Shown here: positions 7,495 through 63,471 of the stretch, piece after piece
How the letters are laid out: each line of letters starts with the position of its first letter
Numbering within the stretch: position 1 is the first letter of the stretch
From: Ginglymostoma cirratum
Lineage: Eukaryota
Assembly: GCA_024137785.1 (NCBI GenBank)
Contig: JAHRHZ010000084.1
Location: 6,969,573 to 7,033,572 of the forward strand
DNA length: 64,000 nt
Direction: 5' to 3'
The notes under the pieces: model-generated
What the model was told of the DNA's origin: nothing
What the model saw: the letters and a program-made list of their open reading frames with translations, nothing else
Databases searched by the model: none
Program-made: the position numbers and the translations under genes

Positions 7495-7797
7495 CAGTCG
7501 ATGCTCTGGTTGAAGTTACCCAGACCCTTGAACATTACATTAAATTACTGGTGCAAGCATTGCATTCAACTGCACAATTTATGTATTTTCAAGACGAGAG
7601 GGATGTGGACAATTGTTAGTGGGAACTTGGGAAAAACGGAATTATGCAGCCAAATCAGATAACAGGATAAGATTTTTCATTGAAAAGTGAACAACCTCCA
7701 TCCAACCTTTGAATGTCAATATCCAGGAGTCTGGGGTCTGTCATTGAGGAGTGACTTGACTGGGAAGAAAGAACAGGGTCGCAGATTTAAGTGAATC
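7495..7797 (+). pseudogene. Decayed Ig V-domain exon, paralog of gene A V exon
   Basis: After acceptor ttttttttgtaatag|CAG, translation across frameshifts gives VDALVEVTQTLEHYIK / ITGASIAFNCTI / FQDERDVDNC*WELGK / SDNRIRFFIEK*TTSIQPLNVNIQESGVCH*GVT / ERTGSQI*VN. This aligns with gene A V (VTEMP..GGNVTWAC..FQDVTCVTVRWWKQGK..DGRKRF..STFQLLNITFQDSGVYHC..GTGSKLIVH). Multiple stops, frameshifts and no GT donor. Confidence 0.8.
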
Positions 7798-8084
7798 AAC
7801 GCTTGTCTTCCGTGGTAGGAGAATTGTAAAGAGCGTAGCCAGTACAGCCTCACACGCATTCCACTGAACACAAGCAGAGCATTTAACCCCTCTCACCACG
7901 ACTTGTACCCGTGTACCAAGGAGCAGAACTGACTTTACTCGCACAAGTCCTTGAGCTGTGAATTTATCTCTCAACTCTAATTTGCACTGTGCCATTGTGC
8001 ACGTAGCTCAGGTGACGTGCTGAGGTCGTGACGTTGTTGTAGATTCTACCTGTCAATTCTGATCCTAAGTTGCACATTCACTAT

Positions 8085-14952: not shown

Positions 14953-16257
14953 ATTTATTTATTCCCAGCTTGCATAGTCTAACTTGCAGTTGGCTTCTTC
15001 AAAATGCCTGTTCTGCACCTACCTCTCAGGAAGACACATCAACTGCAGTGACGGCAGCTGCTATTCAAGTGCAGAAACTGCAATGACTGAGCTTCTCTCG
15101 TCAGTGTTCTAGTGCTGTGAAGCATTTAAGGAATGAATTGTGTATGGGGAATTTAATCAAGTTGACTGTCCTGAAACATGTGTACAGATGAATGATAAAA
15201 AGGTAGTACATCAGGATTGTATGAATCATGATTGGATCAATGCATTAAGAAGTCAGACTTATACTTTCCCTTCAAAAGGGTAGTAAGTGGGTAAGGTACA
15301 ATAACGCATGTGAAATGAACTATCTGTTGATGTCAATATTGAGTCATGCTATAATTAGACCGAAACATGTGATACTATTTCTACTGTTGCTATACACCAC
15401 AAAGTCGGCTTGCAGCATTTGACAGGATTATTAGCAGTTACATTTAGGACTACGTGCTGCAGACCCACATCTGTTTCCGACTTAAAATAAAAAAAAACCA
15501 TTTGACAAAGTACTGACCTTGTAATAACGGGAAGCATAGTAACATTCCATATTATACGTTTATATGATTTCCTGGTGTCACAATGGCAGTTTTCTTTTAT
15601 GATGAAAGACAACTAAGGGATAATTTCAGTGAGTCAGTATATGAGTTCATAGAATTGAGGTACATGTGTCTTATCAATTGTGCACCTAGATTGAATGTCG
15701 GAAGGAGGTAAGCAAGACATAAGTCAATACATGGGTTTTACAGTATCAATTACCAAAGAAATTATAAAATGTTGGTTTGTAAGTGAACACTTTTTTTCTT
15801 GGCGTGCTGCGTACCAATCACTTGATAGAGGAGGAAAACATAAATATTATTGCAGTCAAAAAGAAGAGACGTGTGAATGAATAAATAAATAAGGCAGACT
15901 TATCTCTAATATATGCCAAGTAAGCTAATTTTATTTTCTGAAAGATAGCGAACAAAAAACACGAGTCAACTAATTGAGTATTCCACGATATATACAGACT
16001 ATACTCTGGAATCTCTCACTGGAATTATTTATCATTTTGGCAGGATATTTTTTCAAGGCACAAAAATACTTAGAGTGATATTTCAAAGGAATGCAGATTG
16101 CTAACTGAATGATTCTTCTTTGTGAAATATATTTGTAACTTCTCGATTTGTTGCATGTGGGCATATTCTGTTCATTTCAATTTTGTTGTCAGTTTCCCCA
16201 TAGTCCATGTCTTTTCTATGAGCATGCAAATTTAAGCATCGCATAGGTCATCTTGTC

Positions 16258-16278
16258 TCAGCCTGTTGCTTGTTGAAT
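16258..16278 (-). CDS. Gene A exon 7 (terminal): IQQATG*; tyrosine-motif remnants continue after the stop
   Basis: Acceptor attaatcttgcag|ATT; in-frame DKMTYAMLKF follows the TGA; candidate AATAAA (minus strand) at 15930-15935. Confidence 0.6.
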   Translation of the reverse strand: MQQATG

Positions 16279-19200
16279 CTGCAAGATTAATATTTCGAAT
16301 TGATGTTAATGACCCGTTGTCCAAGACTTGGTGACTATGTTCAGTCATTAAAAAAAAGGATCAAGAAGCAAGAGTAAAGTGGACATAGTCCCTGAAGACT
16401 GCTCTCTCATGAGAGGGAGGGGCAACTGATAGTGGTTTAACCTGAGGGTTACCAATTCTCAGGAACGTTCAAGATGGTGAGAATTGCATAGTCACTTCAG
16501 CCATTGCAATGTTGGTATCCTCAGCATTGCAAACAGGCTGCCCAGCCAACTGAGCTAAGGAACCCCTGACTTAGGTGCAACACAAAGCGGAACCCATGCT
16601 TATCGTTTTTGCATGATTGTTAATCACAACTGTGATTTTTTTTTTCTGATCTGTTTATCAAGCTTACCCGACCATACACGGTTCTCTCATCGTCATGACT
16701 ACTAGTTGGACTTTTTCTGGGTTTGTTCACTTCTACTGCAGAATAATGCACGTCCTCAGCCAATTCTCTCTGAATGGACCAGAAAGGCATAAAATGCTTA
16801 GCTTTATGGCAACTTTGTTGGCATCAGCAACTTACGCACTGCTGAACAAACATGGGACAGATTAAGTTCAACTGGAAATGAATTGCACAAGCTTGAATTC
16901 ATTCGACTAACATAAAGTAAAATGTTAACACAATATGGACACTAGAACTAAAATTTAAACTTGCTCCCTTCTATTTAACAGCAATATTATTAAAAACATG
17001 TGTTTCAATGGAAACTTTTGGCACATGGAAAGATACAATTGATGTTTAAAGATTCTTATCTATGCTCTATTCGCAAAGAAAAAGGCAATTTACTTATTAG
17101 TTATACAGCATTGTTTTCTTTTAATTCAACGCACTGTTTCATAAGAGCACGTCTAACCATCGCTTTTAATGACATATTTTGGTTGGATAAGTGTTTTCAG
17201 TAATTAGAGTTAACGGGATTTTGACATGATTATGAAATAAAATTTCATGACATTAAATTTTAGTTACATTTTGAATAAGTCAGAATGAGCATGTTAACAT
17301 ACCGACACTTCACGGCGGTTTGATCCAGTTAAATAATCTTCTTTATCTATAAATTAATAAGGTTTAGTGTTGTTTAAGGGTTTCCTTATCAACTCAGTTT
17401 ATACACCATTGAATGCAAAGCTAATTGTCAGTCAGAAAAAAGCAAAGAGAAAGAGTCTCAAGTTCCACATTGTGCTGGTAGCATTTGAATTGCCAGCCCT
17501 TGGCGAGAAAACAGTGTATGGTGAGGGAATTTTGTTTCCCGCTTAGATGCTGGGCGCTTCAAACAGTATGGGGAATTTCAGCTGTGGAGATGATTCTGAC
17601 CTCCTGTGCCCGGAAATCAGGCTTAAGAGTCTATTCGGCCATCTATACAGTTGTTACACCGTCGGGATTTTTTACTCTTCAATTAATACTTGTTTGTTCT
17701 TCTACACAAAATGTGTGATCATATGTTCGTTTGCCAAGGTACATTTCATTCATCATGCTGAAAATGGGCATTAATAAAAACTGCTTTTTTGTACAGGAAG
17801 TTGCGCACTCTTGCAATATAGATTCATTTTAAAACAATTGAGACCTAATGGAAGCAAAAGTAATGTGATTTTCAATATTAAATACTATTCGAGGTTTCCC
17901 TCCCCGGTGTTCGAAAGAGAGGCTCTCCTAAATCTTATTCTTAAATCTTTGAATAAACTCAAGGTTTTGCAAGACTTACATTCGTTATTCTGCAGTCGAC
18001 CTCTCCTGCTAATGGCGATTATTGGTACCAAAAAAATCATTCCAATCACCACACATCCAGGCAGCCAGAAATAAAGTGAATTAACGACATTGTCTATAGA
18101 AGTAAGATGAACATTAATCATAGTGGACTTTAGCAAAACTTAGTATCCAAGATTTATTGTTTTAACTAAGATGCTAACTTTAATAAATCTAATTTGGACC
18201 AGACCAAAAGCCCTCAAAATTTTGTGAAGATATTCAAGACCATAACTTAGTCTTATTTAAAGATAAATGTAAGGTGTTGTGTTCCAGATGCAACTCGATT
18301 GGTCAAACTATTGGATTTCAAGCAAAATACACTTTATTCATTGACTATAGTTAAAATACAACAAAAGAAGGGAGGAAATTAAATAACTTACCTCCATTGG
18401 GAAACTCAACAGAACAATAGATGCACAAACTATTGTTCTTTTACTGTTACAATGTAGCAACATTCCATAAACACACTCATGGCAAAAGACAAAATCAGAA
18501 AATTGATGAAATTCCCACAGCCGGAATTAACCCATAACTTTTGCCTGCAGCCAAGAGGGAAAAAAAAACAAAGCTTCCACTTCTTCAAGACTTCAACAGT
18601 AGCTGCTGAAAGATAAAACTAAAACTGCTTGTTCTGTGTGAGCTTGACCACGCCCATTCAGGCTGCTTTTATTTTTCCAACTTGCACTGGCCTGAGAAAC
18701 TGTTTAAAATCTCTCTGAATAAAAGGCAGGATAAATCTTTTAAAGCTACAACATCGTCACAACTCAACGTTATGAAAGCCATAACAAGTGTGTCTATAAA
18801 CATTTTTGATATGATATTTGAACAACCTCTTCACTTCTCTTGAATATTTTAGATTAATCTGTGCAGTGGAAATTAAGCATTTTCAAATACTATTGTAGAA
18901 ACCTGAAATGAAAAACCATCCTATGATAATAAGGCATGTCCTTATTCTGAACTTGTTTGCCTGTTAGCATATTTGGCGCCATTTTCACAATAATTTGTGC
19001 ACTGCTTCTATAGCATTCTAGATTTCAGGAGACATATTGCTAGAGAATCTCTGCAAATCTAATCGCATCCGTGAGTAGAAAACACCATGAACGATTTGAC
19101 ACCAGTGGTCCTTGTTCTGAACTATGTTATCCCTTTTTTCCTCCACATATACTGCCAGATCTGCTGAGTTTCTCCAGCAACTACTGATTTTTTTTGTTTT

Positions 19201-22200
19201 CAGACCTCCCGTATCCGCATTTCTTTGTTACGTTTTGCCCTGGATTTCCGGAATTGGTTAAAAATGCCCTTTCAGTTATCTGTGGTTATTATTTGTGCTT
19301 ACCACTGAATAGTAAATAGGACCAATGGGTATTCAGCTCATTTAGGTTGTATCTGTGGCGGTAAAGATTTATCAATAGGATGAGGTACAGTGCAAACTGC
19401 ACTGTAGTCAGCCTGATGGTATATATTTTCATAATATTGTGAAAGACAGCTGACTCAGATACTCTGTAAATGGGTGAAGGGCGAATTTGGCCAGTCGACC
19501 AATTTCAGCACTCTAAATTAGAAGCAGCTGAAAGTAGATTACATGAGCAAAGGCTGTGATGTAGCATAGTATTGTCATCGGAGATAATGGTTTAAGATGG
19601 GGGTAAAAAGGAGAGCAACTGACATGTCAACGTGCCTCATGTCAGTGGCAATGAACAATATTTCATTAACAGAGAAATAGGTTGCCATGGTGAATGAGCA
19701 GTTAGCAATGCTGTTGCACAGCACCAGGGACCCGGCTTCAATTTCAGACTCAGGCAACTGCCTGTATGGAACTTTCGTATTTTTCCCCGTGTCTGCGTGG
19801 GTTTCCTTCAGTGACCTCCTACAGTGCAAAAAGTGTGGGTTAGGTCTATTGTCTGTGCTAAATCACCAATAGTTTCCAGGGATACATAGATTAGGTGGAT
19901 TAGTCACGGGGGCTACAAAGAGAGGGTAGGGGATTAGTCTGGGTGTGTTGCTCTTCAGAGAATTAGCGGGGACTTGTTGGGCTAAATGGCCTGTTTCCAC
20001 ACTGTAGGTATTCTGAGGAAGAAACTAATTTTTTTTCACTAGAAACACAAGAGTACATATGTTGGGATATAAAAATGTAACTACTGATTTAATTGGATGT
20101 ACAGAATGTCAATATTGGAAACAATATGAGTTATCTGGGAGAATTTAATTGACAAGTAATGTAACTTAGATCTAAACATGCCATAATCAGTTTTGTAAAT
20201 ATCAACATATGAATTTAATGTTTTCTCATATATTTCCCATGGCGTGTCATTATACTAATGTCTTGAGCATTAATCTGTACTAAAGTTACAAATAGCATTT
20301 TACTGAAAGAGACAGTGACTGCTTTTTCTATTGGCCTCAGAAACTCATACCTTCGTTGAATTTAGTAACAGTATAGGTGACAACAGCTGGGATCTTGAGA
20401 GACATGTGAGATACCATACAGGTATAGTTGTCTTCCGTTTGTTTCACGTCAGATAAAATGCTGGAAACCTTATATAGTCCATCAGTGCTCTTCTCTATGG
20501 TGTTGTGTGCTTCTAATCCAGTTTCAGCGCCATTTTTATACCAAGTTAGGCTGAAGTTCTGTGGAAAAAATGGTGCTGTTTCACACACAAGATTCAAAGA
20601 CACAGTTGAATTTCCTTCAGATGGCCTGGAGACAATCTTAAGTGGGGTTGGTGGAACTGCAAAATAAATAATAAATGAATCAAGTTGAGTCATTGGACAC
20701 ATTTGGAACAAATTTAATTCGTACTTACTTTACAGTGTTGCTGAAGAAACTGATTACCTTTCCTTTAAATGTTAATGAGGCCATCTGCACCTATCTCACA
20801 GACACCGAAATCTGGACAGTGTACCCGAACTATCAAACCTACTCATTGAGTTACTCAGAAGACAGAAACACAGAATTATTACAAGGTAAAATATAGGCGA
20901 TGCCGACCACTGCACCTATTGGTCAAATGAACATTTCACTCAATGAGAGACACCTGTCTTCGGCTGTAATCATGCACATAGTCCTTTACAGAAAATAGCC
21001 TTTTGAATGATTGTGTTCGTGTCCACATAGATGTCAACGACATGGAAGGAGTAAAGAAAACTTCTGCTGAGGGAAGTTGAGCAGCAAGAATTGCATTAAG
21101 AAGCCCCATTAACAAGAAGTTAAAAAGCATAACGTTCCGTATGCTATCTGTATCACGAATGATTTGTCCTACGTTAAATTTGATGAGAACATGATATAAA
21201 GGTCGCAAAAATTGGTGTATTAGACATAGTTTTGATTCATAAGACACTGTCACTAGAAATGATGGAAGTGGAGGAGTGATACTGGGGGCAGTCTTCTTCT
21301 GAATCATGCCAGTGTCTGTGTTCTGGCGAGTTGCATCTGTAGATCAGTACAGCAAGATTGCAAATAAATGGTGCTGCTGGGAAATCTTAGGGAAAAAATC
21401 TTGACAATAGAACACAATGCAAGAGAACATCGGAGCATGAAAGGGTATAATGATCAGACAGCGGCAGGAAGGCACAGCTTCTGCAAAACTAAATGCGCAT
21501 TTGAGTCTGTCGGTTAGGCCACAGGTTTCAAAAATAGAAAAAGGACAGATCGAAAGGTTCTGTACCTGAATGCTATTAACGTTTGGTCAAAAACAGACAC
21601 GCTGAATATGCAAATATAAATAAATATGCCTGACTTGATAGTCATTTTAGAGACCTGCTTGCAAGATGATGATGTCTTAGATCTGAATATCCAAGAGTGC
21701 AAGTTTTTGTGGAAATGATGGAAGTGTAGTTTTTTTTATTAAAAGATAGCAATAGTACTGTGAGGACGGATCACATTGTTTGGACTCTCAAGATGTAGAA
21801 TTAATTTGAATGTAGATGAGAAGTTGAAAGGAAATGTCTTGTAGGGAGACCCACTGTCAGCGATCATACTGCAGGTCGTGGTGTATGTAAATATGGTAAT
21901 AGAGGCTTGACTTAAAGATACTCCAATAATCTGGATTTATGTGGACTTGCATATAGATTGGGTGAATAAAGTTTGCAGAGATAGCCTATAAATTAGTTAA
22001 TTGAGTACTTATAACGATAGTCCTTCGAACAATATGTTCTGGAGCCAATCAGGTAGCGTGCTACTTGGCATAAGATGATGGTCAATTGAGTAGAATTGAT
22101 CAATTAAATCATAGAGAGGGCATTCCCCAGTAGCAAGAATCATAATATAATTGAATCTAATATTAATTTTGGAGGAAAAAATACAACTTTTAGATTGTGT

Positions 22201-25200: not shown

Positions 25201-27002
25201 GCCAAGGGACAGATAGCCTCCCTAACTTCCACATTTCTCGTTAATGGTCGGTATTTTTTTTTCTCTTTCACAATAGCTCAAGTTGTTTATTTCTCTGGTA
25301 AAGAGAAAAGCAAAGTATTTGAAATCATATCGCACTTATTCCATTCACCTCTGAGTGAAAATTCTTTTGCTGATCCTTAATATTGTCTATCTTTTATGCT
25401 ATGGGACCTTTATAATCATTTGCGCACTTTTGGAATGATTTGAGATTCCGCTTTGCGTTAAAACCCAATCTCTTTTCGTGCTTTCTTTTCTTCTCATGTT
25501 AACTTTTTCAGTTTAGCTCTGGAGGTTTTATATTTAATGTCATTCTCGATTGTATTTTCTAACTTGAAGCTGACAGGTTGCAACAATTGAAGTCGAGTGC
25601 TTTTCATAATCTAAAAACATAAATAAAACTTGGAAGCAATCTGTGTGCTTCCATATTTCAGGCACAGATAGATGATAACGAGGAATTTGTTGTTAAAACA
25701 AAAGTCTCTGGTCCGGATGAGATGAATTTGACAATCAGATTACAAATGGTGAAATATCATGTGCATATAAAGAAAAGAGGACTAGGCCACATCGTCTTTC
25801 AAATTGTTTTTACGTTGATTTATGAGGGGACAACGATGTATGCTTTAGAAAATGGGCTAAGAATCTGAATTTACTGGAAATTCACGAAAGACATTTCAGT
25901 TCGTCACTTCCTTGAAGTGCGTCCCAGACATTAGCGATTATACCCAAGATTCATACTTTACATTTAGAGTTCGATTCTAATTGCCTGTATTGAGACGTGT
26001 GACATTGAATGTCTAAGTAGCTCTTTTGTTTCAAAATATCCTCATTTATGATTGATATGCTCCCTACTATTGGGCTGTTCGTTTGTTCTGCACTTACCAT
26101 GAACAATTAGCTTTGACCCAGTTCCATTTCCTTGAATGATTCCATGACACATCACTGTACAGTGATAGACTCCAGAGTCTTGGAAAGTTATATTCAGCAG
26201 CTGGAAAGTACTGTACCATTTTGTTTCCAGACCAAATCGTTTTCTGCCATCGCCACTGTCTTGCACGTATTCAGATTTGCCCTGTTTCCACCAGCGCACG
26301 GTAACGCAGGTTACATCTTGGAAGATCGAAAATCTGCACGCCCAGGTAACGTTTCCTCCTTTGGTTACAGTCACTTCTTTGGGCATTTCGGTCACTCTGG
26401 ACGAAGTGCCGTCTGAAGCTGTCAAGAATAGTGTCAATTACAGGCTAATTATTTTACACATCGCGCGTTGAACTAAGAGAGAAGGGAACGGGCATGGATA
26501 AAGAGGAAATAAACTGTAATAAATTGATTTACATAGATATTTACAGCAGCTGGTACCCCTCGCTGTCTCTGAACCAAATGCTCCGCATTGGTGTCAATTC
26601 TGGACTTGATGACTAAAGAAGGCACATTCAAAAATGGCTGTACTTGTTTATCATCAACCCGCAAAACATTCCAAAGCGTTTATATCAGGCGGTAAGAGCG
26701 GGAGCATTTCCTGCTCAGCCATGATTGACTTGGACTTGCGCCCCTCGGATTAGACAGTATGGCCATCGGCGGGCGTGGTGTTTGAGGATAAAGTCTGTGA
26801 TTCGAAAAAGGACGTAAGACTCGGATTTCTACCCCATGGGTCACTAGGCTTGGAAAGATAAAGATAGAGAAAGCAAAAAACAGATTTACCTCGCCGTTAT
26901 TTCGGAAGTAGTTCGCAAGTTACCTGGGGTAATCAATAAGAACCTACCTGCGGGAATTATCCTGTGGAGAATCAGGCACAACAGAATCAGACACACTGAC
27001 AT
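16258..27002 (-). CDS. Gene A: non-rearranging V(J)-C1-TM IgSF receptor with ITIM and ITSM (SIRP-like / VJ-C1 type inhibitory receptor), 320 aa; join(26948-27002, 26098-26418, 20351-20656, 17980-18093, 17303-17346, 16668-16769, 16258-16278)
   Basis: All introns GT-AG with compatible phases (1,1,1,1,0,0); 55+321+306+114+44+102+21 = 963 nt open frame. Signal peptide, V-set, C1-set, hydrophobic TM and tyrosine motifs occur in the expected order. Confidence 0.85.
16668..16769 (-). CDS. Gene A exon 6: ITIM/ITSM exon RELAEDVHYSAVEVNKPRKSPTSSHDDERTVYGR
   Basis: Acceptor cctttctggtccattcag|AGA, donor CGG|GTAAGC; 102 nt, phase 0-0. VHYSAV fits the ITIM consensus; TVYGR plus I or V fits ITSM TxYxxI/V. 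Confidence 0.82.
17303..17346 (-). CDS. Gene A exon 5: short cytoplasmic exon (Y)KEDYLTGSNRREVS
   Basis: Acceptor ttattaatttatag|AT, donor TCG|GTATGT; 44 nt, phase 1 to 0, which is exactly what is needed to join the TM exon to the ITIM exon in frame. Confidence 0.72.
17980..18093 (-). CDS. Gene A exon 4: transmembrane exon DNVVNSLYFWLPGCVVIGMIFLVPIIAISRRGRLQNNE
   Basis: Acceptor cttacttctatag|AC, donor GAAT|GTAAGT; 114 nt, phase 1-1; uncharged hydrophobic stretch followed by RRGR stop-transfer. Confidence 0.9.
18190..18761 (-). mobile_element. Solo-LTR-like element in gene A intron 3
   Basis: Similar to 8090-8370 (ttggaccagacc.., gtgttgtgttccagatgcaactcgattgg, tagttaaaatacaacaaaagaa); begins TGTGACGATGT on the minus strand. 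Confidence 0.5.
19681..20015 (+). mobile_element. tRNA-derived SINE (shark HE1-like), decayed
   Basis: tRNA-like head (gttagcaatgctgttgcacagcaccagggacccggcttcaatt), ccccgtgtctgcgtgggtttcc core, and CR1-like tail ggcctgtttccacactgtagg. Confidence 0.8.
20351..20656 (-). CDS. Gene A exon 3: Ig C1-set domain
   Basis: Acceptor tattttgcag|TT, donor GAAG|GTATGA. Motifs: LVCETAPFFPQNFSLTWYKNG, DGLYKVSSIL, YTCMVSH. Confidence 0.95.
21400..24450 (+). mobile_element. Old, highly decayed CR1 LINE (endonuclease through RT)
   Basis: Residual RT-like DNA motifs (catcctgtttgactaattta; gtggatgtactgtacttagttttccacaatgcattc); no open frame. Confidence 0.6.
24450..25560 (-). mobile_element. Decayed CR1 fragments in antisense
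   Basis: Antisense CR1-like segments (actgattgcagttatcc..; ttgccagcgaatacacaact..); boundaries approximate. Confidence 0.45.
26098..26418 (-). CDS. Gene A exon 2: Ig V-set domain with germline J-like G strand
   Basis: Acceptor ttcttgacag|CT, donor CATG|GTAAGT. Motifs: VTEMP, GGNVTWAC (B-Cys), VRWWKQ (C-Trp), FQLLNITFQDSGVYHC (F-Cys), GNGTGSKLIV (G strand). Confidence 0.95.
26948..27002 (-). CDS. Gene A exon 1: signal peptide MSVCLILLCLILHRIIPA
   Basis: ATG at 27002; hydrophobic 18 codons plus 1 nt; donor CAG|GTAGGT (phase 1); 529 nt upstream of the V exon. Confidence 0.88.
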
Positions 27003-30000: not shown

Positions 30001-30120
30001 AAATGGGGGAGGGGAAGAGGGTTCTGAAATAAATAGGGAGAGAGGGGGAGGCGGATAGAAGATGGATAGAGGAGAGGATAGGTGAAGAGGAGGCAGACAA
30101 GTCAAAGAGGCGGGGATGGA

Positions 30121-30220
30121 NNNNNNNNNNNNNNNNNNNNNNNNNNNNNNNNNNNNNNNNNNNNNNNNNNNNNNNNNNNNNNNNNNNNNNNNNNNNNNNN
30201 NNNNNNNNNNNNNNNNNNNN
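30121..30220. other. Assembly gap (100 N)
   Basis: Run of N inside the purine-rich arm of the Penelope inverted repeat. Confidence 1.
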
Positions 30221-45759: not shown

Positions 45760-46580
45760 TGATTTGATTTTATTTGATTTATTACTGTCACATACACTGA
45801 CGTGCAGTCAAAAGTGTAATCTTATGTTTTTTACAGGCAGATTGTACTGTACAAGTGCATCATGGTAACAGAGCAAACTGCAGTATACAATGGTACAGCT
45901 GCCAAGAAGGTGCAGAAAGAGATCAACAATAACATTAAAGAGGTCTATTCAAAAGTCTGATAACAGCAGTGAAGAAGCTGGTCTTGAATCTGTTTTTACG
46001 TGTGTACAAAATTTGTATAAACTTATATAGCTTCTGCTCAATGTAAGAGGGTGGAAGAGAGTACAAGCAGAGTAGGAGGGCCCTTTGTTTTTATTGGTTG
46101 CTTTCACAATGCAGTGGGTAGTATCGGTGAAGTTAATGGATGACAGGCTGGTTTGCATGGTGAACTGGAATGTATTCACAACTTTCTCTAGTTTCTTTCA
46201 GTCTTTGAAGGGCAGTTATGTACCATGCTGTGAAGCATCCAGATAGGATGCTTTCTATGGTGCATGTATAAAAATTTGTACTAGTCTTAATGAACATGCC
46301 AAATTTCCTTCGCCTCCTGAAGAAGTAGAAGTATTATTGTGCTCTCTTGATTGTAGTGTCAACATGGGCGGACCAGGACAGATTATTGATCATCACTACC
46401 AGGAACTTGATGCTCTCGACCATCTCCACTTCAGCACCATTGATACAGTCAGGGGTAAGCCCTCCAGTCCACTTCCTGAAGCCAATGACCAGCTCTTTCA
46501 TTTTGCTGACATTGGTGGAGAGATTGTAGTCTTTACATCTTGCCATTAAGAGCTCTAGCTCCTTCCTGTGCTTTGTCTTT
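45760..46580 (-). mobile_element. Rex1/Babar-type LINE RT C-terminal fragment
   Basis: ORF 46334-46624: CKDYNLSTNVSKMKELVIGFRK..INGAEVEMVESIKFL..NLSWSAHVD..IKRAQ. Confidence 0.75.
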
Positions 46581-47093
46581 GTAGGGTAGAACAATGGCTG
46601 CCCATTGGTATAAAATGGCTGCAATAACAGAATTAGCTTGCCTGATCCAGCATTAGAGTGAGGTTATAAGTTAAGCACAATGGTTGCTTTGAGAAGGAGG
46701 GAACCCAATGTAACAGGATCTTTTTGAATAAAGAATCATACAAATTAATCTCGAGGGAGTTCCGTACAAACAACAGCTGGGGAAACTCTGTAAGAATCAG
46801 TCTGGTAAGAGGTGTCTGGAAATAGCCCAGAGTTGTAAATCAGCACGAATTCGAAAAAAGCATCACTCAAAAATGATAGAGTCGAATGATAAATTAAAAG
46901 AATAACAAAATTATGCCTTCTAAAAACCTGGAGTTTGCATAAGTTCACTGTACTGTGAAAAGTTATTGAGTTTAATTCTTATTAAACAAATAGAAGTTAT
47001 CTATTAGGTAAAAAGTGTTAGGGTAGAATATTCAGAGTCAGCAAATTTCATCTTAAAAGACAGCATATGATTAGAAGGCATGTATTTTGTTTC

Positions 47094-53900: not shown

Positions 53901-55533
53901 GCCACTCTTGAAACCATAGGCTCAGGGAAGAAAATTCCATCACTCAGGTAAAGGAGTAATCACGATAATCGAATGCCTACTTTCCTTTTCTGTGGAATGC
54001 GATGGAACAAAGAGTAATGGGTTATAAATTTGCACTGAAAGTAGGCTTTTGTGAAGTATGTTTCATAGGTGAAAGTGGCTTGCCTTTTTTGCATAAATTA
54101 TAGGTCAATTAATTGCTCATTAATTTTGGTTCAAAATCCCAAAATAAGAAAGCCTCTGAGGGACAAATTAATGCAACCAAAATGCTGGTTATGAATTCTT
54201 GTAAATAAAAGCAAATTATTGTGGATACTGGAAATCTGAAATAAAAACAAGGTGCTGGAGAAACTCAGCAGGTCCATCTGCATCTGTGTGGAGAGATACA
54301 GAGTTGATGTTGAGCCGGAATGACTGCTCTTTTGGAGAAGAATTATGGGGAGGTTGAAATCTTAACTCCATTTCCCACACAGATCACTGTCAAACCTGCT
54401 GAGTTTCTCCAGTACCTTGTTTTTATTTGCAAATTCCTGGACCATATTTCAACATTTACACATTTTTGAAACAAAGTTTATTATATTTTTATTATATTTT
54501 AACACAATTACCATAACAGTATCAAGAAAAGTTATGTATTTGGAATACAATTGATTAAAGCAAATTATATTATGTCGATGGCAAGAGTATAATTAACTTA
54601 TTAATGACATATTTACCAGAATATAAAAATAACATACATAGCAGAGAAAATTTATGATACCAAAGGAGAACATTTAATCCATCTTGACTGTGCCAATCAA
54701 CAAGAAGCTACTCAGCCCATCCCACCTTCCTGTATATGATTGCTAGCCTTGTAGGTCACAGTTCTTCAAACATGTATCCAAATACTTGTCAAATGTGTAA
54801 TTTGCTGTCTCAAACACGAAGTTAAATTCATGCAGTCTGCACGTTGACCCCTTTGCTGAGGTGAACAGATTGTAAAACATTATTTTTCCTGCGCTTTTTA
54901 TAATTATATACATTACTTAGTATGTTATCCGCAACAATGATTGCAATTTTTAAATTAGTATAATGGTATATTATGATTTAACATAACAATGTAAGCACTT
55001 GCACCATGAAGATTTGGAATACAATAAAATATGTATACTTGGTGACAGAAATCAATGGTCGAATTTGGTAAAAATTGATCACTGGAACTGGACCCTGCTC
55101 ACTAAGAATAAAGAGTAGAGAATTCTGGACAGGGATGTGAATAAACTGAAATTCAACAAAGTGTATTGACTGGGGCACTGAAATGTTGTGCAATGTATGT
55201 CTGAAAATGTGACAGAAAAATGTGAACACTCAATGAAGACATTAGCCAAATTACCAAAACTGATCAGAGATAAGGGTATTATCAATTTGGAGATAATTCA
55301 TGGAAGAAAAGTAACGTTTAGTGAATTAACAAATACGGTTAAAAACAGTAATTGTACGACATTGCAACTCCCTGAATTATCTCAAAAATCGCTGATGAAC
55401 ATATTCTGTCCAAAACAGTATAGATGTTCTCCAACGAGAACCCACGGTTGTTATAAAAACAAACTTCAGATTGCTTCATCAATCATTAAGGACACTCAGA
55501 GTCCCTCTCCTTCTTATGTTGTTTCTTGCACTT

Positions 55534-55688
55534 TTATGCAGTTTCATTAACATTTGGTCCAGTGCTTGGGTTCACAGCTGGCGTTGGATTATTATCATTT
55601 CTTAATCCTTGTTCTTTCCATTTTGGATTCATTGGTATTGGCTCAGAGCATCGAACACATAGCCTTGTTTGAATACTGTCTTTAGGAG
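55534..55688 (-). CDS. Gene B probable terminal cytoplasmic exon APKDSIQTRLCVRCSEPIPMNPKWKEQGLRNDNNPTPAVNPSTGPNVNETA*
   Basis: Strong acceptor gttgtttttcttatag|CT in phase 1; hydrophilic open frame in non-repetitive sequence. Confidence 0.6.
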
Positions 55689-58600
55689 CTATAAGAAAAA
55701 CAACATTAAATATAACAGAGCAGTATATCTGGAACACATTTGATGTGCTGACAACTTTATTACCTGGAATGGTATTGGAAAGTGTTGGTCAAGATGTGGT
55801 ATTTGTTTTGTCAAATTAATGAATGGGACCATTTTCTAAATTAAGTCATCATAACTTTCACCATATCCCAAAATACTCCACATCCTGTGAAATACTTTTG
55901 CAAGAGCAGTCACCATTGTAAGATTACATATAACTTGCCAACAGAATTGCCTTTTGAACCAACAATAAGATGATGATCAACTAATCTCCTGGAACATTAT
56001 TTCAATCTGATATTCTACATCAATTCATGGTGAACGTTAATTCCGATAATTATGACTTCGTGACTTTTATTCACATGCTGTATCACAGTTAACTAGGAAG
56101 ATTCTGGATGCATAATCTAGACAAATGTCATTGTGAGCAAGTGCTGCAATGTCTGGTGTAACATCATTGGTTCGTATGTTAAAGAAGTCCATCTGCTCTA
56201 TAAGATCCATATAAAAGATCCCAAACCACAATTTCGAAAACAGCAAAATGTTCTTACATAACATATTACAAAACAGTAAATCTAGCCTATGCATAGTTTC
56301 AAACAAAAGCAAAACACCATGGATGCTGGCAACTCTGAAATGTAAACAAAAAGTGCCAAAGAAACTCCAAAGTTCTGGCAGCATCTGTGGAGAGAGAAAC
56401 ATAGCCAAGGTTTTAACTGTAATACGACTCTCCTTCAGAACTCCAAAAGAGTTATACTGGAATTAAAACATTTAACTCTATTTCTCTCTCCACAGAAGAT
56501 GTCAGACCTGATGAGTTTCTGCAGCACTTTGTTTTTATGCATATATTATGAATGCATACATTAACCTACCCAAACCAGATATCAATACATTTAATCCACA
56601 AAAGGAAGGGTCACTTGCCTTTTAACAGATGTAACATTCATGGACCAGTTAGTGGCAAGTAACAGTCATATTACACAAATCCAAGCAATGACCAACTCCA
56701 ATAATGTGGATGTGCTGGTGTTGGACTGGGGTGGACAAGGTCAATAATCACACTCCATCAGATTATAGTTCAACAGATTTATTTGAAATCACAAGCTTTT
56801 GGAGCGCTGTTCCTTCATCAGGTGAAGGCATTAGCATTAGTTAATGTTCCACTGTTAACAACCTAGAAGTTAATATTGACCAGAAGTTGAACTTCACCAG
56901 CCATGTAAGTAATATAGCTAGAAAAGGAGGTCAGAGGCTTAGAAGTCTGCAGCAAGGAACTCATCTCCTGACTCCCCGAAACATGTCTACTGTCTGCACA
57001 TCACAATTCAGGAGTGTGACAGAATACCCTCAGCTTGTCTGAATATGTATCAGAGATAAAAGGTACTGCAGGTGCTGGAGAATCCGAGATAACAAGCATG
57101 GGGCTGGATGAACACAGCAGGTCAAGCAGCATCATAGGAGCAGGAAAACTTGACGTTTCGGGCCTAAACCCTTCATCAGAAAATCAGATTTTCTGATGNN
57201 NNNNNNNNNNNNNNNNNNNNNNNNNNNNNNNNNNNNNNNNNNNNNNNNNNNNNNNNNNNNNNNNNNNNNNNNNNNNNNNNNNNNNNNNNNNNNNNNNNNN
57301 NNNNNNNNNNNNNNNNNNNNNNNNNNNNNNNNNNNNNNNNNNNNNNNNNNNNNNNNNNNNNNNNNNNNNNNNNNNNNNNNNNNNNNNNNNNNNNNNNNNN
57401 NNNNNNNNNNNNNNNNNNNNNNNNNNNNNNNNNNNNNNNNNNNNNNNNNNNNNNNNNNNNNNNNNNNNNNNNNNNNNNNNNNNNNNNNNNNNNNNNNNNN
57501 NNNNNNNNNNNNNNNNNNNNNNNNNNNNNNNNNNNNNNNNNNNNNNNNNNNNNNNNNNNNNNNNNNNNNNNNNNNNNNNNNNNNNNNNNNNNNNNNNNAA
57601 CCCTTCATCAGAAAATCAGATTTTCTGATGAAGGGTTTAGGCCCGAAACGTCAAGTTTTCCTGCTCCTATGATGCTGCTTGACCTGCTGTGTTCATCCAG
57701 CCCCATGCTTGTTGTCTGAATATGTGTTGCTGCATTTTCACTCATGAAACTTTATACACTCCAGGACAAATAATCCGATTTCAGTGACCCATTCAGCAAA
57801 TTGAAACTTCACTCCCCACAACATCGATAATCTGTGCACCATAAAGTGGAAGCAGCAGTGACAGAATATGAAAGATACAGTCAGTAGCTCAACAACACCA
57901 TCCAAACCTGCAACTTCTATGCTCTATTAGGACAAGGTAACAGAACTTTGAGAACACCACCTGGAAGTCCCCTCCACGCCATCCTGTCTTGGAAGTATAT
58001 AATCGTACCTTCACTGTCACTAAGTCGACATCCTGGAACTCCTTTTCGAAAAGGAGTAATGCGCCGATATCAACTAGATTGCAGCAATTCAAAATTGTGG
58101 CATACTACCAGTTTATCATGAGCAAAAAGGGACAGACTGCAAATGCTGGCCTTATTAGTGATGTCACATGGAAGAATAAAAATGCTGACGTCAATTTAAA
58201 AAGAACCAATTATTTTAAAAAAAGCCTCCTTTTTGCTGCTCACGTATATTTAAAGCATTAAGATTTCTACGAACATGAATCAAGGATATGCTAGCTGATA
58301 TTCTTTAAGTTCTCCATACAACTACTACTATCATATCATGGGGCAAATTTGTATTGTGATGTCTAGCTTGGTTATAAATTCAATGGTCTCCAGAAATCCC
58401 AGATAGTGAAAAGACCTTAGTGAGCAGGTTGATATAATATGCTCCATTGCACAGAATGCATGGAAAGAACTACACTTCAGGTCACTCATGGCAGGCTGAT
58501 ACAGAAGGTAAAGTCGCACAGAGTCAGATGTGAGCTTGGAAGATGGATATAAACAAACTGGCCAGGTCACACAAGACAGAGGGTAGCTGTGGAAGGGCGC

Positions 58601-61600
58601 ATTTCTGAATGGAGGGCTGCGACTGGTGGCAAGCCTCAGGGATCAGTTTTGGGACCTTTGCTATTTGTAATATATATATATAGATGATTTGGAGGAAAAT
58701 GTAACTGGTTTGATAAGTAATTTTGCGGATGACATAACAGTTGGTGGATTTGTGGATAGTGAAGAGGACCACCAGAGGATACAGCAGGATATAGATCGGT
58801 TGGTGACTGGAGCAGAGATATGGTAAATGGAGTTTAATCTGGAAAAATGTGAGGTAATGCGTTTTGGAAGGCCAGTCCAGGTGGAAAATATACAGTAAAT
58901 GGCAGAACCCTTAACAGTACTGATAGGCAGAGCGATCTGTGTATACAGGTACACAGGTGGCAAGGCATGTGGAGAAGGTAGTCTTCATCAGCCAGGGCAT
59001 TGAGTTTAAAAATTGGCAGGTAATATTGCAGCTTGATAGAAGCTTAGTTAGGCAGCAATTATGCCACCAATTTTGATGTTGTTCTGCAACCATGCCTTCT
59101 ATTATTTCATCCAAATCATTTGCATAAATAACAAACAAAAGAAGACCCAGAACAGATCCTTGATCACTGCTGGTGACAGGCCGCCAGTCCAAAAAAAAAC
59201 CCTCCACCACCACTATCTACCTCCTGTTGTTAAGCAAATTATGAATCCAATTGGCAATCTCACTGTGACTGTCACGTGACCGAACTTTCCTGATTAGTCT
59301 ACCATTTAGAAGCTTGTTGAAGGCTTTACTCAAGTTGAAATTGACAACATCTACTGCTCTACCTTCATCAATCTTTTTAGTAACTTCCTCAAAAAACTCA
59401 ATCAAGTTTGTAAGACATGATTTTCCTTGCACAAAACCATGCTGACTATCGCTAATCAACTTTTGCCTCTCTAAATGTCCATCAATCCCATCTTTTAAAA
59501 TCACCCCTCACAATTTACCCACAACCAAAATCAGATTCACAGGTCTATAGTTCGCTGGTTTCTCCTTACAACCTTAGTTAAACAGAGGTATAACATTAGC
59601 CAGCCTCCAATCATCTGGACCTCACCTATAGTTACAGGCGATGCAAATATTTCTGCAAGGGGTTTCACAATTTCCTCCCTTATGCCCCACAATATTCTGG
59701 GATACATTAGATTAGGTCTTAGAGATTTATCCATCTTTAATATTCTCTAAAACCTCCAGAACATCCTCTTCTGTAATGTGAACTTCTAAATTTATCTCCC
59801 TGCCTTCTTTAGCTTCAGTTTCTTTCTCCACAGTAACACCTTTCAACATGTTGCCATTGTGTATTTGCATTACCCATTGATGTTAAATCGAGAACTTCAA
59901 CATTAATGGAACTAGATGGCTACCATACCTTGACGTTTACAACATTTACAACACATGACCAGTGCCATAATAATCAGAAGTAGTGAAGATACTGCTACAC
60001 AGATGTAGATCCAACAAGAAAAAGATTCGCTGAAACCAGAATCTGCGAGAAACACACAAATATCAAAAAGGTATTTAAATTTGTTTTCCTTCTAATGATA
60101 TATTAGAATAACAGACGGTTACTTAACTCTAAGATCCTAGGTTATTCTGATGGCACGTTACAGATGATACTGTGAAGTTAAGTTGGCTGTACAATAACAG
60201 CATGGTGGGCTTCACATCCAACATTCCAAAGTGGGCCATAACAGTACTTCAAACGTATAAAATTACTCAATACGTACCTTAGGTGGGGGTTGGAACATTT
60301 GAACGCAGTTCCTAATTGGTGTAGGCCAAAACTATCTACAGTTTGGTTCAGAATAGCAATAGGTTTCTAATATCAATTGAACAATCTATAAGAATAGAAG
60401 TAAAAAATTGGTGAATAGAATACTTTAATGATGGTGTTCCTCGACAGATGGAGGTAAGAATATTAAACACTGCATCTTATCCATGTCATATTTGACTTGG
60501 ATATATTTTATGCTCAAAAAGAAAAAAAGTTCTTCTCCAGAGCAATCATCTTTGTTCAGCGAGAATAAAATACCTTCAAAAATGGAACGTGCAAAAATAT
60601 TTGTATGATTAAAAAATAATACTGCTGGAAAATTGCATTTGCTATAAGCTAGCAAAAAAAAAATTATAATTTGTTTGTGAATACTTTTGCTCTCACTTCC
60701 AACGAAATTGCAAATATGTCAGCAGAGAACACAAGTACAGCTTCACTAGACGTTCTGAACAGAACAAATCTTGGAAATCTGATTTGTCACTTGAAATGTT
60801 ACTACAATGTGTTTCAGTCCAGCAGTAAATTTTCTTAACACATACTAGAGGAGTCAAATGTTACATTATTAATTATTTAAATAGAAAGCACATGATTAAT
60901 TTGGATCCATCATAATCTTTTTGCCCCATTTATCCTGCTGAATGAATTGACATATGTTATCTGTTACAACCTTGGGATTTTGAAAGTGCTTTACAGCTAG
61001 TTAAAACATTGAAACGTGCAGCCAATTTTTACACAGTAAAGGGCATAGTGGACAACTGAGCTCGGGCTAATTACACTGAAATATGAATTTTCATTCCACC
61101 ACAGCTAGAGAATTTTCATTCAATTAACTAATTAAACATAAAAATGACAACGTGGAGTAACTTCTGGATTGTCATAAAACCCCTGCTGGTTCACCGAAAC
61201 ATTTCAGAAAAGGAAATTCACCAATGTTTCCCAGTCTGCCAATATGTACACCTAGATTAATGTAGCTCATTCTTATCCTTCCAGTGTACCACGGGTAATT
61301 TGAAATAAGTATGGTCAGTGATATTCACATACTGTGAATGAAAAGCATGGTGACGCTTTGGCTCATTGTGTTCACCCCTCCAACTGTTGACTTTTGATCA
61401 CCACACACTGTCAGATCTGCCTAGAACTGCAGACCTTTCAGCCTTACATCTGTAGTTCGGGAAATGCTAGAATCAGAAAGTACATGATAAATGGACATTA
61501 AATAAAAATTCTCCGCTTGGTCGCAGTCACCATGGACAAATTTGTTGATTTTCTTTTTCTGAGAATGCTGGTAGCAAAATTGATAAAGGGGGAGTCAATG

Positions 61601-63471
61601 TGTGAACTACATTAGGATTTTCAGAAGGCTGCTCGTAAGGGAGCCCACAAACATTTAGTTCGAAAAATTCAAGCAAATGGCTCAGAACGTAATGCACTGG
61701 CATGGATTTAACATTAGTTTCAGTGTTCGCCTGTATAGGAAGAAGTGGGCTATTCTCTCATTAACAGACGTGACTAGTGGGGAACTACGGTCCAGCTGTT
61801 CACAATGCAAATCAATGATTTGGCTGTCTGTAGCCAAAGTAATTTTATTTTTCAAATTTGCAGGAGTGTGTGTTGAGAGAAAGATGTGAAATATTTCAGC
61901 AGGATTTGGTCAGGCTCTGATTGGGAAAGAATGTGCCGTGTGGAATAAAATGTGGAAAAACATCAGATTATCCACTTTAGCAGGAAGAACAGGTGTGCAC
62001 AGGTTTCCATAAAAACTGAGAGCTTGGAAAATATCGGTGTTCAAGGGTACCTAGCTGTCCTTGTCAATAAATCACTGAACATTAACATGCAGCTACAATA
62101 CGTTTGTAGGAAGGCAGAAAGAAAAATAAACATTAATGCAAGAGAATGTGCGCACAGTGGTAGTGAATCTTTGCTTAAATTATGAAAGAAATTAGTTCAA
62201 CTTATGGGTGAGTGATAAATGCTGGCCCAGCCAGCGACACAGTCATCTCATGAATGAATGAAGGAAAGTAAACAACACATGGAGTACCACGTGCAGTTTT
62301 GGTCTCATTCTGTCGGGAAGTTAATATTTCCATCATGGGAGAACAACAAAGAATCACCAGACTTGTTCCAGAATGGCTGGATTGTCTTATGAAAACAGAT
62401 TGGACAAACTGGGCCCATATTCCTTAGTGTTTCATACAAGAAGAGGTGATCTCATTGAAAACGACAAAATACTTAAAGGGATGGACAGTTGAGATGCAGA
62501 TGTTTCCCCTGACAGGGGAGTCTAGAATAAGGAGGCACAATTTAAAAACAAGAGGGATGCCACTTAGGTCTGAGATGAAGAGAAAACCACTTTTTTAAAC
62601 AGCAGTTGATTATCCATGGAAATCACCAGAACAGAGGACTGTGGAAGCTCAGTTTTTGAGTACGTAGACAGGGCGGCACGGTGTCTCAGTGGTTAGCACT
62701 GCTGACTCACACCCTTGGGTGACTGTCTGTGTGGAGTTTGCAGATGATCCCGCGTCTGCGTGGGTTTCCTCCGGGTTCTCCAGTTTATCCCACAGTCCAG
62801 ACATGTGCAGGTTCGGTGATTGGCCATATTAAATTGCCCATAGTGTTCAGGGATGTGTAGATTTGGTGGGTTTTCGGGGGATGGGTCTGGGTGGGATACT
62901 CCGAGGGTCGGTGTGAACTTGTTGGGCTGAAGGGCTTGTTTCGACACTGTATGGATTCTATGGTAATAAATTTCTTACTACATACAGAGTGGTGCGGGGA
63001 TGGGGTAGGGAGCTGATTTGGAAAGAAAATATGCATCTTGTTCTCTGGTTCAGGTTGGAACTAGGAACTTGTTGATCTTTCTGATATATTAGATTCTTTT
63101 TGAAAACAATTCCTACCAAATGCAGTAAACCCACAACATGCTCGATTTCACAACGAAATAAGTATTGTTCTTACCTGGAATGAGAACAGTGTAATTTACC
63201 CAGGTTGGATCCGTGAGAGTAGAGTGTGATACCTCACAGACATAAACAGTTCCAGTATGAGCTGGCTCTTCATCTGTCAGAAAACTGGTAACTTCATATA
63301 GTCCTTCAGCATTCTTAGTTCTGAATGTTTCTACTCCAGTTCCAACATTTTGACCATCTTTTCGCCAAGCAATAGTATAATTATCAGGATAGAACGCGGA
63401 CGTTTTACATATACATGTTAGAGAGCCATTTGCAGAAAATTCCGAAATAATCTTCAGAGGATGTGGAGAAG
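55534..63471 (-). CDS. Gene B (partial; leader and V lie beyond the window end): C1-TM-cytoplasmic IgSF receptor paralogous to gene A; join(63175-63471, 59929-60042, 55534-55688)
   Basis: Phase-1 GT-AG exons in the same order and orientation as gene A; the TM exon has the identical 114-nt length. Confidence 0.8.
57152..57179 (-). ncRNA. Minimal type I hammerhead core (intact)
   Basis: Minus strand CTGATGA-A-GGGT(ttag)GCCC-GAAA-C-GTC. Confidence 0.75.
57199..57598. other. Assembly gap (400 N)
   Basis: Run of N. Confidence 1.
57625..57652 (+). ncRNA. Minimal type I hammerhead core (intact)
   Basis: CTGATGA-A-GGGT(ttag)GCCC-GAAA-C-GTC. Confidence 0.75.
58350..59060 (+). mobile_element. CR1 RT fragment
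   Basis: cctcagggatcagttttgggacc (PQGSVLGP), ttttgcggatgac (FADD). Confidence 0.85.
59061..59840 (-). mobile_element. CR1 RT fragment, opposite orientation
   Basis: ORF 59217-59504 SQHGFVQGKSCLTNLIEFFEEVTKKIDEGRAVDVV..SKAFNK; ORF 58911-59213 QGSVLG. Confidence 0.9.
59929..60042 (-). CDS. Gene B transmembrane exon DSGFSESFSCWIYICVAVSSLLLIIMALVMCCKCCKRQ
   Basis: Acceptor tgtgtttctcgcag|AT, donor CAAG|GTATGG; 114 nt. Confidence 0.9.
61400..62668 (+). mobile_element. Decayed CR1 RT/3' region
   Basis: actgcagacctttcagccttacatctgtagttcgggaaatgctagaatc (NYRPVSLTSVVGKMLES-like); the 3' region resembles a CR1 ORF2 end. Confidence 0.75.
62669..62960 (+). mobile_element. HE1-like tRNA SINE
   Basis: gggcggcacggtgtctcagtggttagcactgctgactcac head, gtctgcgtgggtttcctccggg core. 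Confidence 0.88.
63175..63471 (-). CDS. Gene B C1-set exon
   Basis: Acceptor caattttcatag|CT, donor CCAG|GTAAGA; ASPHPLKII..LTCICKTSAFYPDNYTIAWRKDG..EGLYEVTSFL..YVCEVSH. Confidence 0.95.

Follow-up and report, generated by a model that had tools for sequence, protein, structure and literature searches.

Two probable members of a non-rearranging, SIRP-like receptor family of cartilaginous fishes in a contig of Ginglymostoma cirratum

The DNA considered here (the window) is a stretch of 64,000 nucleotides (nt) from contig JAHRHZ010000084.1 of the shark Ginglymostoma cirratum (assembly GCA_024137785.1). It carries, on its minus strand, two genes that I will call A and B, both encoding a C1-set immunoglobulin (Ig) domain and a transmembrane (TM) segment; gene A is complete, with a leader and a V domain, and gene B is present for the most part. 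It is likely that these are two members of a chondrichthyan family of non-rearranging V-C1-TM receptors that resemble the signal-regulatory proteins (SIRPs), gene A being of inhibitory type and transcribed, and gene B belonging to a separate lineage, called here B-type. An earlier reading of the letters of the window (the original prediction) had described a cluster of such receptors, and its claims are taken up below where the results bear on them. The features are collected in Table 1. All sequence searches, fold models and trees were made exon by exon.

Table 1. Features of the window, those of each gene in the order of transcription. Positions are counted from the first letter of the window. 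P0165 is a Heptranchias protein, P0055 a protein of Hemiscyllium. ITIM and ITSM, immunoreceptor tyrosine-based inhibitory and switch motifs; iE, independent E-value; UTR, untranslated region.
Feature	Positions	Strand	Description
Gene A exon 1, leader	26948..27002	-	MSVCLILLCLILHRIIPA + 1 nt, phase 1 out; ATG and GT donor
Gene A exon 2, V with J-like G strand (NGTGSKLIV)	26098..26418	-	single 321-nt exon; AG and GT sites
Gene A exon 3, C1-set	20351..20656	-	306 nt, phase 1-1; RNA contig covers exon
Gene A exon 4, connecting peptide, uncharged TM and RRGRLQNNE	17980..18093	-	114 nt, phase 1-1
Gene A exon 5, cytoplasmic	17303..17346	-	44 nt, (Y)KEDYLTGSNRREVS, phase 1 in, 0 out
Gene A exon 6	16668..16769	-	RELAEDVHYSAVEVNKPRKSPTSSHDDERTVYGR; ITIM VHYSAV and start of ITSM
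Gene A exon 7, coding part	16258..16278	-	IQQATG + TGA; completes TVYGRI
Gene A post-stop relic of ancestral tail (DKMTYAMLKF...), now 3' UTR	16154..16257	-	aligns to RDKLTYATLAL of P0165
Gene B C1-set exon	63175..63471	-	297 nt, phase 1-1; Pfam C1-set 9e-11; family profile 119.3 bits
Gene B TM exon	59929..60042	-	114 nt, phase 1-1; uncharged TM, then CCKCCKRQ
Gene B last coding exon	55534..55688	-	(A)PKDSIQTRLCVRCSEPIPMNPKWKEQGLRNDNNPTPAVNPSTGPNVNETA + TAA; no tyrosine; tblastn with P0055, E 1.2e-27
Gene B post-stop continuation	55486..55533	-	KCKKQHKKERDSECP*; still similar to last 16 residues of P0055
Decayed V exon, same family, opposite orientation	7464..7815	+	tblastn E 0.004; family profile iE 2.7e-5 at 7526-7768
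Assembly gap 1	30121..30220		between genes A and B, within palindromic Penelope-like element 29904-31812
Assembly gap 2	57199..57598		gene B TM-to-tail intron; flanked by inverted repeat 57087-57198 / 57606-57717

Structure and transcription of the two genes

Gene A runs from 27002 to 16258 in seven exons, with consistent phases and with GT-AG boundaries at every intron, and encodes a protein of 320 amino acids (aa) in a frame of 960 nt. The original prediction had proposed just this complete gene, from leader through V, C1 and TM to tail, and its exon model is confirmed, three of the six junctions (and one further exon boundary) being present in spliced RNA. The evidence comes from a public RNA run of the same species (X9), in the form of Logan contigs. 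One of them, contig 10, joins the C1 exon to the TM exon (20351 to 18093) and the TM exon to the first cytoplasmic exon (17980 to 17346), and it ends precisely at 17303. At its other end it departs from the genome exactly at the C1 acceptor, the first 29 letters having no place in the stretch examined. Another, contig 9, joins the second and third cytoplasmic exons (16668 to 16278), so the donor directly after TVYGR is in use; since the same contig matches 16181-16278 without mismatch, the stop codon of gene A is present in RNA. Read on the strand of the gene, the parts skipped by these contigs are all GT..AG (CT..AC on the plus strand). The 3' UTR probably extends to about 15929: an X5 contig lies over 15929-16084, and an AATAAA is found at 15935-15930.

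Within the C1 exon, two positions of the X9 contig disagree with the assembly. One difference, at 20405, changes Met to Val (VSHMSL to VSHVSL, the latter being the family consensus), and the other, at 20487, is synonymous. The RNA thus does not belong to the data of the assembly but stems from a second allele or from another individual; either the gene is polymorphic or the animal was a different one.

Two other signals in the RNA data lie within introns of the gene. The reads of a polyA run (X3) are confined to two repeat stretches in the C1-to-TM intron, 19137-19196 and 19970-20014 (copies near 43152-43224, 54371-54429 and 62877-62959). The two stretches draw thousands-fold depth, and partial reads, in every run. 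These short repeats are probably a highly expressed family resembling short interspersed nuclear elements and unrelated to the gene. In the intron between the second and third cytoplasmic exons, one X9 contig has a joint at 16454-16537 that skips 82 nt, with AT..AG ends and 21 nt on its short side, and the depth across 16379-16575 exceeds that on the exons of gene A. This is probably due to a repeat or to another transcript.

A profile was built from 40 proteins of the family described below and run on the six-frame translation of the window. Three intact Ig exons were significant, the V and C1 exons of gene A (138.8 and 130.4 bits) and the C1 exon of gene B (119.3 bits), together with one relic of a V exon. 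The V exon of gene A is also recognized by the Pfam V-set model (7e-7). It ends in NGTGSKLIVH, a J-like strand of the form GxGxxLxV directly before the GT donor, and because that strand is contiguous with V and runs straight into the donor, the exon is a germline-joined VJ exon. Rearranging Ig and T-cell receptor (TCR) genes have separate V and J elements with recombination signals; gene A has V and J-like strand in one exon. The AlphaFold2 model of the domain (predicted local distance difference test, pLDDT, 90) is a compact V domain with the C'-C'' region almost absent, and a structure search with the model gave as nearest folds the shark VNARs (at the top), CD79b, V domains of TCRs and antibodies, and NKp30. 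The domain also has two cysteines that are absent from the family consensus, one in the CDR1 (complementarity-determining region 1) region (DVTCVTV) and one in the CDR3 region (VMCHG).

A single C1 exon stands between V and TM in gene A. The Pfam C1-set model matches it at 1.1e-11, with 45 bits as against 24 bits for the C2-set_3/butyrophilin C model, and its best sequence match in PDB is domain 3 (d3) of SIRPalpha (3.7e-14). The AlphaFold2 model (pLDDT 89) has seven strands and lies nearest to the beta2 domain of major histocompatibility complex (MHC) class II and to beta2-microglobulin, with a template-modelling score of about 0.8. The structural residues of both Ig domains are kept: both pairs of cysteines, the Trp, DSGVYHC and YTC.VSH.

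The cytoplasmic tail of gene A contains an ITIM (VHYSAV) and an ITSM (TVYGRI, split between exons after TVYGR), their tyrosines 23 residues apart. Both had been read from the genome in the original prediction, and both are present in spliced RNA. The N-terminus of gene A resembles MSASMVFLCLTLRGII of P0165, and the 20-residue spacer is equal in length to that of P0165. The stop codon truncates the tail relative to the four- to five-tyrosine tails of relatives. It is secondary, because DKMTYAML, which follows the stop, aligns with the third tail motif of P0165. Another Heptranchias protein, P0167, has a short two-tyrosine tail like that of gene A.

Gene B is represented in the window by its C1, TM and last coding exons, its leader and V exons presumably lying outside it. 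The exon phases of C1 and TM are equal to those of gene A, and the TM exon has the same length, which bears out the tandem paralog that had been predicted; the last exon is added here. It is separated from the TM exon by assembly gap 2, and its acceptor and stop can be read in the sequence. Compared to P0055, a 323-aa protein of the epaulette shark, gene B is 71% identical in C1 and 68% identical in TM, and the cluster of P0055 includes bamboo shark members at identities of at least 90%. Gene B apparently has a one-to-one ortholog in Hemiscyllium and Chiloscyllium, its nearest orthologs thus being orectolobiform. Its TAA comes 17 codons earlier than the stop of P0055.

A scan for ITIM and ITSM sequences downstream of gene B had turned up no credible motif exon, and the real tail was then located by homology. 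It is free of tyrosine and rich in proline and lysine, and the juxtamembrane stretch CCKCCKRQ is rich in cysteine and lysine. The expectation that gene B is not inhibitory is upheld by this tail. Since the TM segment has no charged or basic residue, gene B is not an activating partner, and so it appears to be neither a classical inhibitory receptor nor an activating receptor of the DAP12 type. No known signalling motif was recognized in the juxtamembrane segment or tail of B-type proteins. The lineage as a whole (P0055, P0215, P0216, P0038 and P0111) is marked by a CCKCCKRK stretch, CxRCSEPI, and a basic tail without tyrosine that ends in KKHxKKxR. One of its proteins, P0111, has the tail and no TM segment.

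The chondrichthyan family and the two genes within it

When the V domain of gene A was compared to 1.84 billion representative sequences, 77 clusters were found at E<=1e-10, the best of them only 54% identical. Relatives predicted by the NCBI pipelines number at least 62, from at least 15 species. Named matches among NCBI and UniProt predictions come from sharks (Mustelus, Scyliorhinus, Heterodontus, Heptranchias, Cetorhinus, Carcharodon, Chiloscyllium and Hemiscyllium), from rays (Hypanus, Hemitrygon, Mobula, Pristis, Amblyraja and Narcine) and from the chimaera Callorhinchus. Many members of the family share one chromosome per species. The members with a single V domain, at least 106, are nearly all V-C1, and the Pfam C1-set model reached 37 of 40 that were sampled. 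The original prediction of a multigene family of non-rearranging VJ-C1-TM receptors thus finds its counterpart in a large chondrichthyan expansion, and not in plain one-to-one orthology to SIRPA or NCR3LG1.

The family is known as database predictions under pipeline names, and hence is not new as sequences. The names clash with one another: SIRP-alpha-like, SIRP-beta-1-like, tapasin-related-like, CD276 homolog, NCR3LG1-like, Ig lambda-1 light chain-like and MHC class I- or II-like. Those that refer to tapasin, CD276, Ig lambda or MHC are misleading and should not be propagated. I found no paper on a SIRP-like V-C1 family in cartilaginous fishes, in a literature search that mostly did not cover subscription papers, so that absence is not proven.

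The members may be sorted by their tails, in a classification that is partly heuristic. About 51 have tyrosine motifs, about 14 combine a short tail with an Arg near the start of the TM segment, and four are B-type; the remainder are short-tailed, partial or secreted. In the relatives of gene A the tail contains four or five tyrosines, arranged as xxYAxL(D/N)L ... RTVYAQ ... LTYAxL ... TEYAx. The C1 tree has at least five well-supported places where Arg-TM forms are neighbours of forms with a tyrosine tail. The Heptranchias pair P0171/P0196, one with a tyrosine tail and one with an Arg-TM, is 89% identical in V and 90% in C1, and the pair P0024/P0022, which might be isoforms of one gene, is 97% identical in V and 94% in C1; over the pairs of the family, ectodomain identity ranges from 86% to 97%. 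Tyrosine-tail and Arg-TM/short-tail forms with near-identical ectodomains constitute the pattern of SIRPalpha and SIRPbeta (PMC12975943). To judge from these sequences, the chondrichthyan V-C1 family behaves as a paired-receptor family.

The two genes of the window occupy different parts of the family. Gene A falls in a clade of 12 elasmobranch members in both trees (support by the Shimodaira-Hasegawa-like approximate likelihood ratio test, SH-aLRT, 98 for V and 91 for C1), together with genes of Heptranchias, Heterodontus, Mustelus and Scyliorhinus and with Arg-TM genes of stingrays. Gene B falls in a separate B-type clade (SH-aLRT 99). Predicted proteins like that of gene A include XP_067853517.1 and XP_067853518.1 (Heptranchias perlo), XP_067906051.1 (Heterodontus) and XP_078066559.1 (Mustelus), and the predicted orthologs of gene B are XP_060694223.1 (Hemiscyllium ocellatum) and XP_072403784.1 and XP_043563242.1 (Chiloscyllium). 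They have the architecture, exon-level colinearity and tails of genes A and B, except that the tail of gene A is shorter than those of its predicted relatives. Gene A is 51-61% identical to its clade in V and C1, and no relative above 61% identity was found in the databases searched. Arg-TM forms occur in the family at large; neither gene of the window has a charged residue in its TM segment. Local birth and death is visible in the window only in a single dead V exon and in the truncation of two tails by stop codons, and the lineages themselves are long-lived.

Kinship with SIRPs and with antigen receptors

SIRPs are the only receptors with a true C1-set domain that do not serve in antigen recognition, and a kinship between them and the antigen-receptor precursor was proposed long ago (PMC2785349). 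The shark genes and the mammalian SIRPs (PMC12975943, PMC2785349) are alike in that a V domain whose G strand is J-like stands at the N-terminus, accompanied by C1-set sequence and a single TM segment. Both occur as multigene clusters, and both comprise inhibitory members with paired tyrosines, members of activating type, whose tail is short and whose TM segment includes a basic residue, and others for which no signal is known. They differ in the number of C1 domains, one in the shark genes and two in SIRPs, the shark C1 matching best the membrane-proximal d3 of SIRPalpha. In addition, the family has expanded far more in chondrichthyans, only two of the four or more tyrosine motifs are left in gene A, and the B-type tail has no counterpart among SIRPs.

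The question of whether the family lies closer to SIRPs or to antigen receptors was approached through profile scores and a comparison of tails, with relatives reached in chondrichthyans, in sturgeon and paddlefish, in the coelacanth, and in a few unrelated cases. Among PDB chains, the family profile gave 70.4 bits with Ig lambda (framework region 3 through J to C), 67.8 bits with Ig kappa (V-J-C), 56.2 bits with the V-C1 of UrIg2 and 44-51 bits with VH-CH1. SIRPalpha gave 68.4 bits over d1-d2 and 46.8 bits over d3. The tails offer another comparison. A protein of the paddlefish Polyodon spathula (P0138, 'signal-regulatory protein beta-1-like isoform X3') has the tail motifs LTYASL, CAYAEI, ITYASL and TEYASV, which are close to the four motifs of mammalian SIRPalpha. 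Its membrane-proximal C1, TM and tail give a colinear match to the family profile (47 bits), and the four-tyrosine tails of gene A's relatives, xTYAxL(D/N)...xxYAx, align with its tail. It differs in its layout, V-V-C1-C1, and in its low identity to gene A. A V-C1-TM protein of the coelacanth (P0145) scores 139 bits against the profile, a single match with a doubtful N-terminus and, like P0138, of low identity to gene A. The tail and the organization of the family into inhibitory and activating forms point to SIRPs.

A number of observations weigh against the reading of the two genes as SIRP-like receptors, one of them inhibitory and transcribed. The ectodomain does not separate SIRPs from Ig light chains, because their profile scores are equal. 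Taken by itself, the tail of P0138 matches shark tails only weakly (E 4e-5 to 0.05 in a set of 236 sequences), and short tyrosine motifs can converge. Since a second C1 domain is absent, the genes are not SIRPs in the strict sense, hence the term SIRP-like. Gene A has lost half of the ancestral tail and sits on long branches (0.52 and 0.37, compared to medians of about 0.15). Its junctions from leader to V, on the donor side from V to C1, and from the first to the second cytoplasmic exon were drawn from sequence and from homology to P0165. No reads on its exons were found in polyA run X3, of which a quarter was read, nor in run X4, which hints that its expression is low or restricted to certain tissues. 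The model of gene B likewise was made from sequence and homology.

Other explanations of the locus must be set against this one. The original prediction had cast genes A and B as a pair, and one might suppose them to be a functional paired-receptor couple, seeing one ligand with opposite or absent signalling, as their tandem arrangement on the same strand, shared exon phases, TM exons of 114 nt each and different tails could suggest. I consider this very unlikely. The C1 domains of the two genes are only 39-42% identical, the V of gene A is 34% identical to that of the ortholog of gene B, and the clades are separate, from which it follows that the genes do not form a matched pair but come from two old lineages. 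Those clades predate the spread of modern sharks, gene B has no basic TM residue, and the real pairs of the family are far closer in their ectodomains. The prediction was right as to the kind of genes and their differing tails, and overstated the pairing and the novelty. It is also unlikely that gene A is decaying, transcribed with its function lost and on the way to becoming a pseudogene. The loss of the distal tyrosine motifs to a premature stop would accord with such a fate, as would the longest terminal branches in its clade, the lack of reads in X3 and the dead V exon nearby; yet the reading frame is open through all seven exons and the splice sites are canonical, the structural residues named above are still in place, splicing of the transcript is correct, the two remaining motifs lie at the distance that tandem-SH2 phosphatases use, and short tails recur in the family, as the two-tyrosine tail of P0167 illustrates.

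A different objection is that the genes encode not receptors at all but ligands of the B7/butyrophilin type, such as a homolog of B7H6. The best weak PDB matches of the V domain of gene A are Skint1 and PD-L1, secondary Pfam matches are found to C2-set_3 and to the C2 domain of CD80-like proteins, and some relatives bear the pipeline names 'NCR3LG1-like' or 'CD276 homolog'. I regard this possibility as extremely unlikely, given that C1-set is clearly the strongest Pfam match, that B7-H6 is absent from the best 60 PDB matches of every query, and that tails with ITIM and ITSM and partners with Arg-TM are features of receptors. Another idea is that the genes are relics of the antigen-receptor precursor whose nearest kin are Ig light chains, TCR or UrIg and not SIRPs, the SIRP-like tail having arisen by convergence. 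VJ in one exon with exactly one C1 and a TM segment is the architecture of a single Ig or TCR chain, the profile scores given above place Ig lambda, Ig kappa and UrIg2 beside SIRPalpha, several members have been named 'Ig lambda-1 light chain-like', and the V fold of gene A is nearest to VNAR, TCR and Ig V. The idea is nonetheless improbable in view of the tail plan (xTYAxL / xxYAx) and the colinear match of C1, TM and tail to paddlefish SIRP-like proteins. The family, furthermore, consists of expanding paired receptors, unlike UrIg, a conserved single relic (PMC12227049), and SIRPs are already viewed as antigen-receptor-like (PMC2785349). The link to the antigen-receptor precursor drawn in the original prediction stands in the general form of that argument for SIRPs and does not hold as a statement specific to this locus.

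The genes invite comparison with other non-rearranging receptors. UrIg and UrIg2 are likewise non-rearranging shark genes with VJ in one exon and C1-type domains. UrIg is reportedly the subject of a study by Flajnik et al. in 2023, and PRARP is said to be that of one by Fu et al. (2019, J Immunol 202:1992). A passage of PMC10751288 lists PRARP among the VJ genes in the MHC. UrIg is secreted and has VJ and three C1 domains, and UrIg2 has VJ and nine, as compared to one C1 and a TM segment in the present family; each is a single conserved gene linked to the MHC or to an Ig/TCR complex, with no ITIM tail and no paired-receptor expansion (PMC12227049).

The teleost NITRs and the KIR, LILR and CHIR families resemble the shark genes in their germline-encoded V-type tandem clusters, in their ITIM and charged-TM forms and in their frequent pseudogenes. 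No sequence relationship to the shark genes was found beyond the Ig fold, and none of these families is known to have a C1-set domain. A V-V protein of Polypterus senegalus (P0102/P0214), which matches the V of gene A weakly, is merged in one GenBank model with 'PRC2A protein', presumably PRRC2A, a gene of MHC class III. The Polypterus protein may be an MHC-linked VJ gene, similar to NKp30 or PRARP.

If gene A is an inhibitory SIRP-like receptor, its V domain would bind a ligand, with the single C1 domain acting as a stalk. Phosphorylation of the tyrosines of the ITIM and ITSM, at their distance of 23 residues, would recruit the tandem-SH2 phosphatases SHP-1 or SHP-2 and so damp the cell, the premature stop having removed distal tyrosine motifs that relatives retain. 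I infer this scheme, with its phosphatase recruitment, its ligand and its cell type, and would say the same of any role given to gene B. A bolder and rather unlikely proposal is that the single-C1 family, with its coelacanth relative, is the ancestral form behind the V-C1-C1 SIRPs, and the closest living membrane-bound, non-rearranging relative of the light-chain or TCR type of chain. The equal profile scores of Ig light chains and SIRPalpha fit such a proposal. If it were true, the B-type lineage, with its palmitoylation-like CCKCCK and its basic tail without tyrosine, would represent an undescribed mode of signalling for Ig-like receptors.

What the window itself adds is modest: two exon models, RNA for one of them, a corrected tail for each, and the fact that neighbours come from old and separate lineages. 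The family matters more. Cartilaginous fishes have dozens of genes per species with the V, single C1 and TM layout of one Ig or TCR chain, a concrete set for comparison beside UrIg and UrIg2 in the debate on the origin of antigen receptors, and a candidate innate paired-receptor system for shark immunology.

The rest of the window

The original prediction had noticed a decayed V exon, on the plus strand, and this is recovered weakly. A second frame is found at 7464-7658, and the relic has several stops and a frameshift; it shows that genes have been lost locally. Neither a C1 nor a TM relic that might go with it was found in the window by the family profile in six frames, and the profile found no further C1 in the window beyond those of genes A and B. 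A decayed paralogous promoter, also predicted, was not borne out: with a word size of 7, blastn of 26419-27800, which takes in the promoter, leader and intron 1 of gene A, against the window returned only the self-match and a weak self-inverted match of 39 nt (E 0.074). When the regions of genes A and B were compared by blastn, only shared repeats were found. The interval between the two genes is mostly transposon debris, with no other host gene found in it, and the window contains no flanking gene from outside the family.

There are two runs of N in the window, and neither assembly gap touches an exon. Gap 2 is the centre of an inverted repeat of 112 nt, 98% complementary, and a hairpin-like structure may be the cause of the failure to assemble it. 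No coding exon is expected within this gap, because the TM and tail exons of gene B abut, with no residue missing in comparison with P0055. Gap 1 lies in the left arm of its palindromic element, whose arms encode remnants of a GIY-YIG endonuclease of the Penelope-like type. On one side of the gap, 29904-30120 pairs with 31596-31812 of the other arm, and on the other side 30227-30683 pairs with 31109-31565, in both cases at 94-95%. Only 30 nt separate these two partner segments; the sequences to the left and right of the gap are therefore colinear, in order and in orientation, and its true length is probably below the 100 N with which it is written. Fragments of non-LTR (long terminal repeat) retrotransposons, with endonuclease-reverse transcriptase or reverse transcriptase domains, are found at 410-882, 46334-46624 and 58911-59504, one of them inside the TM-to-tail intron of gene B.

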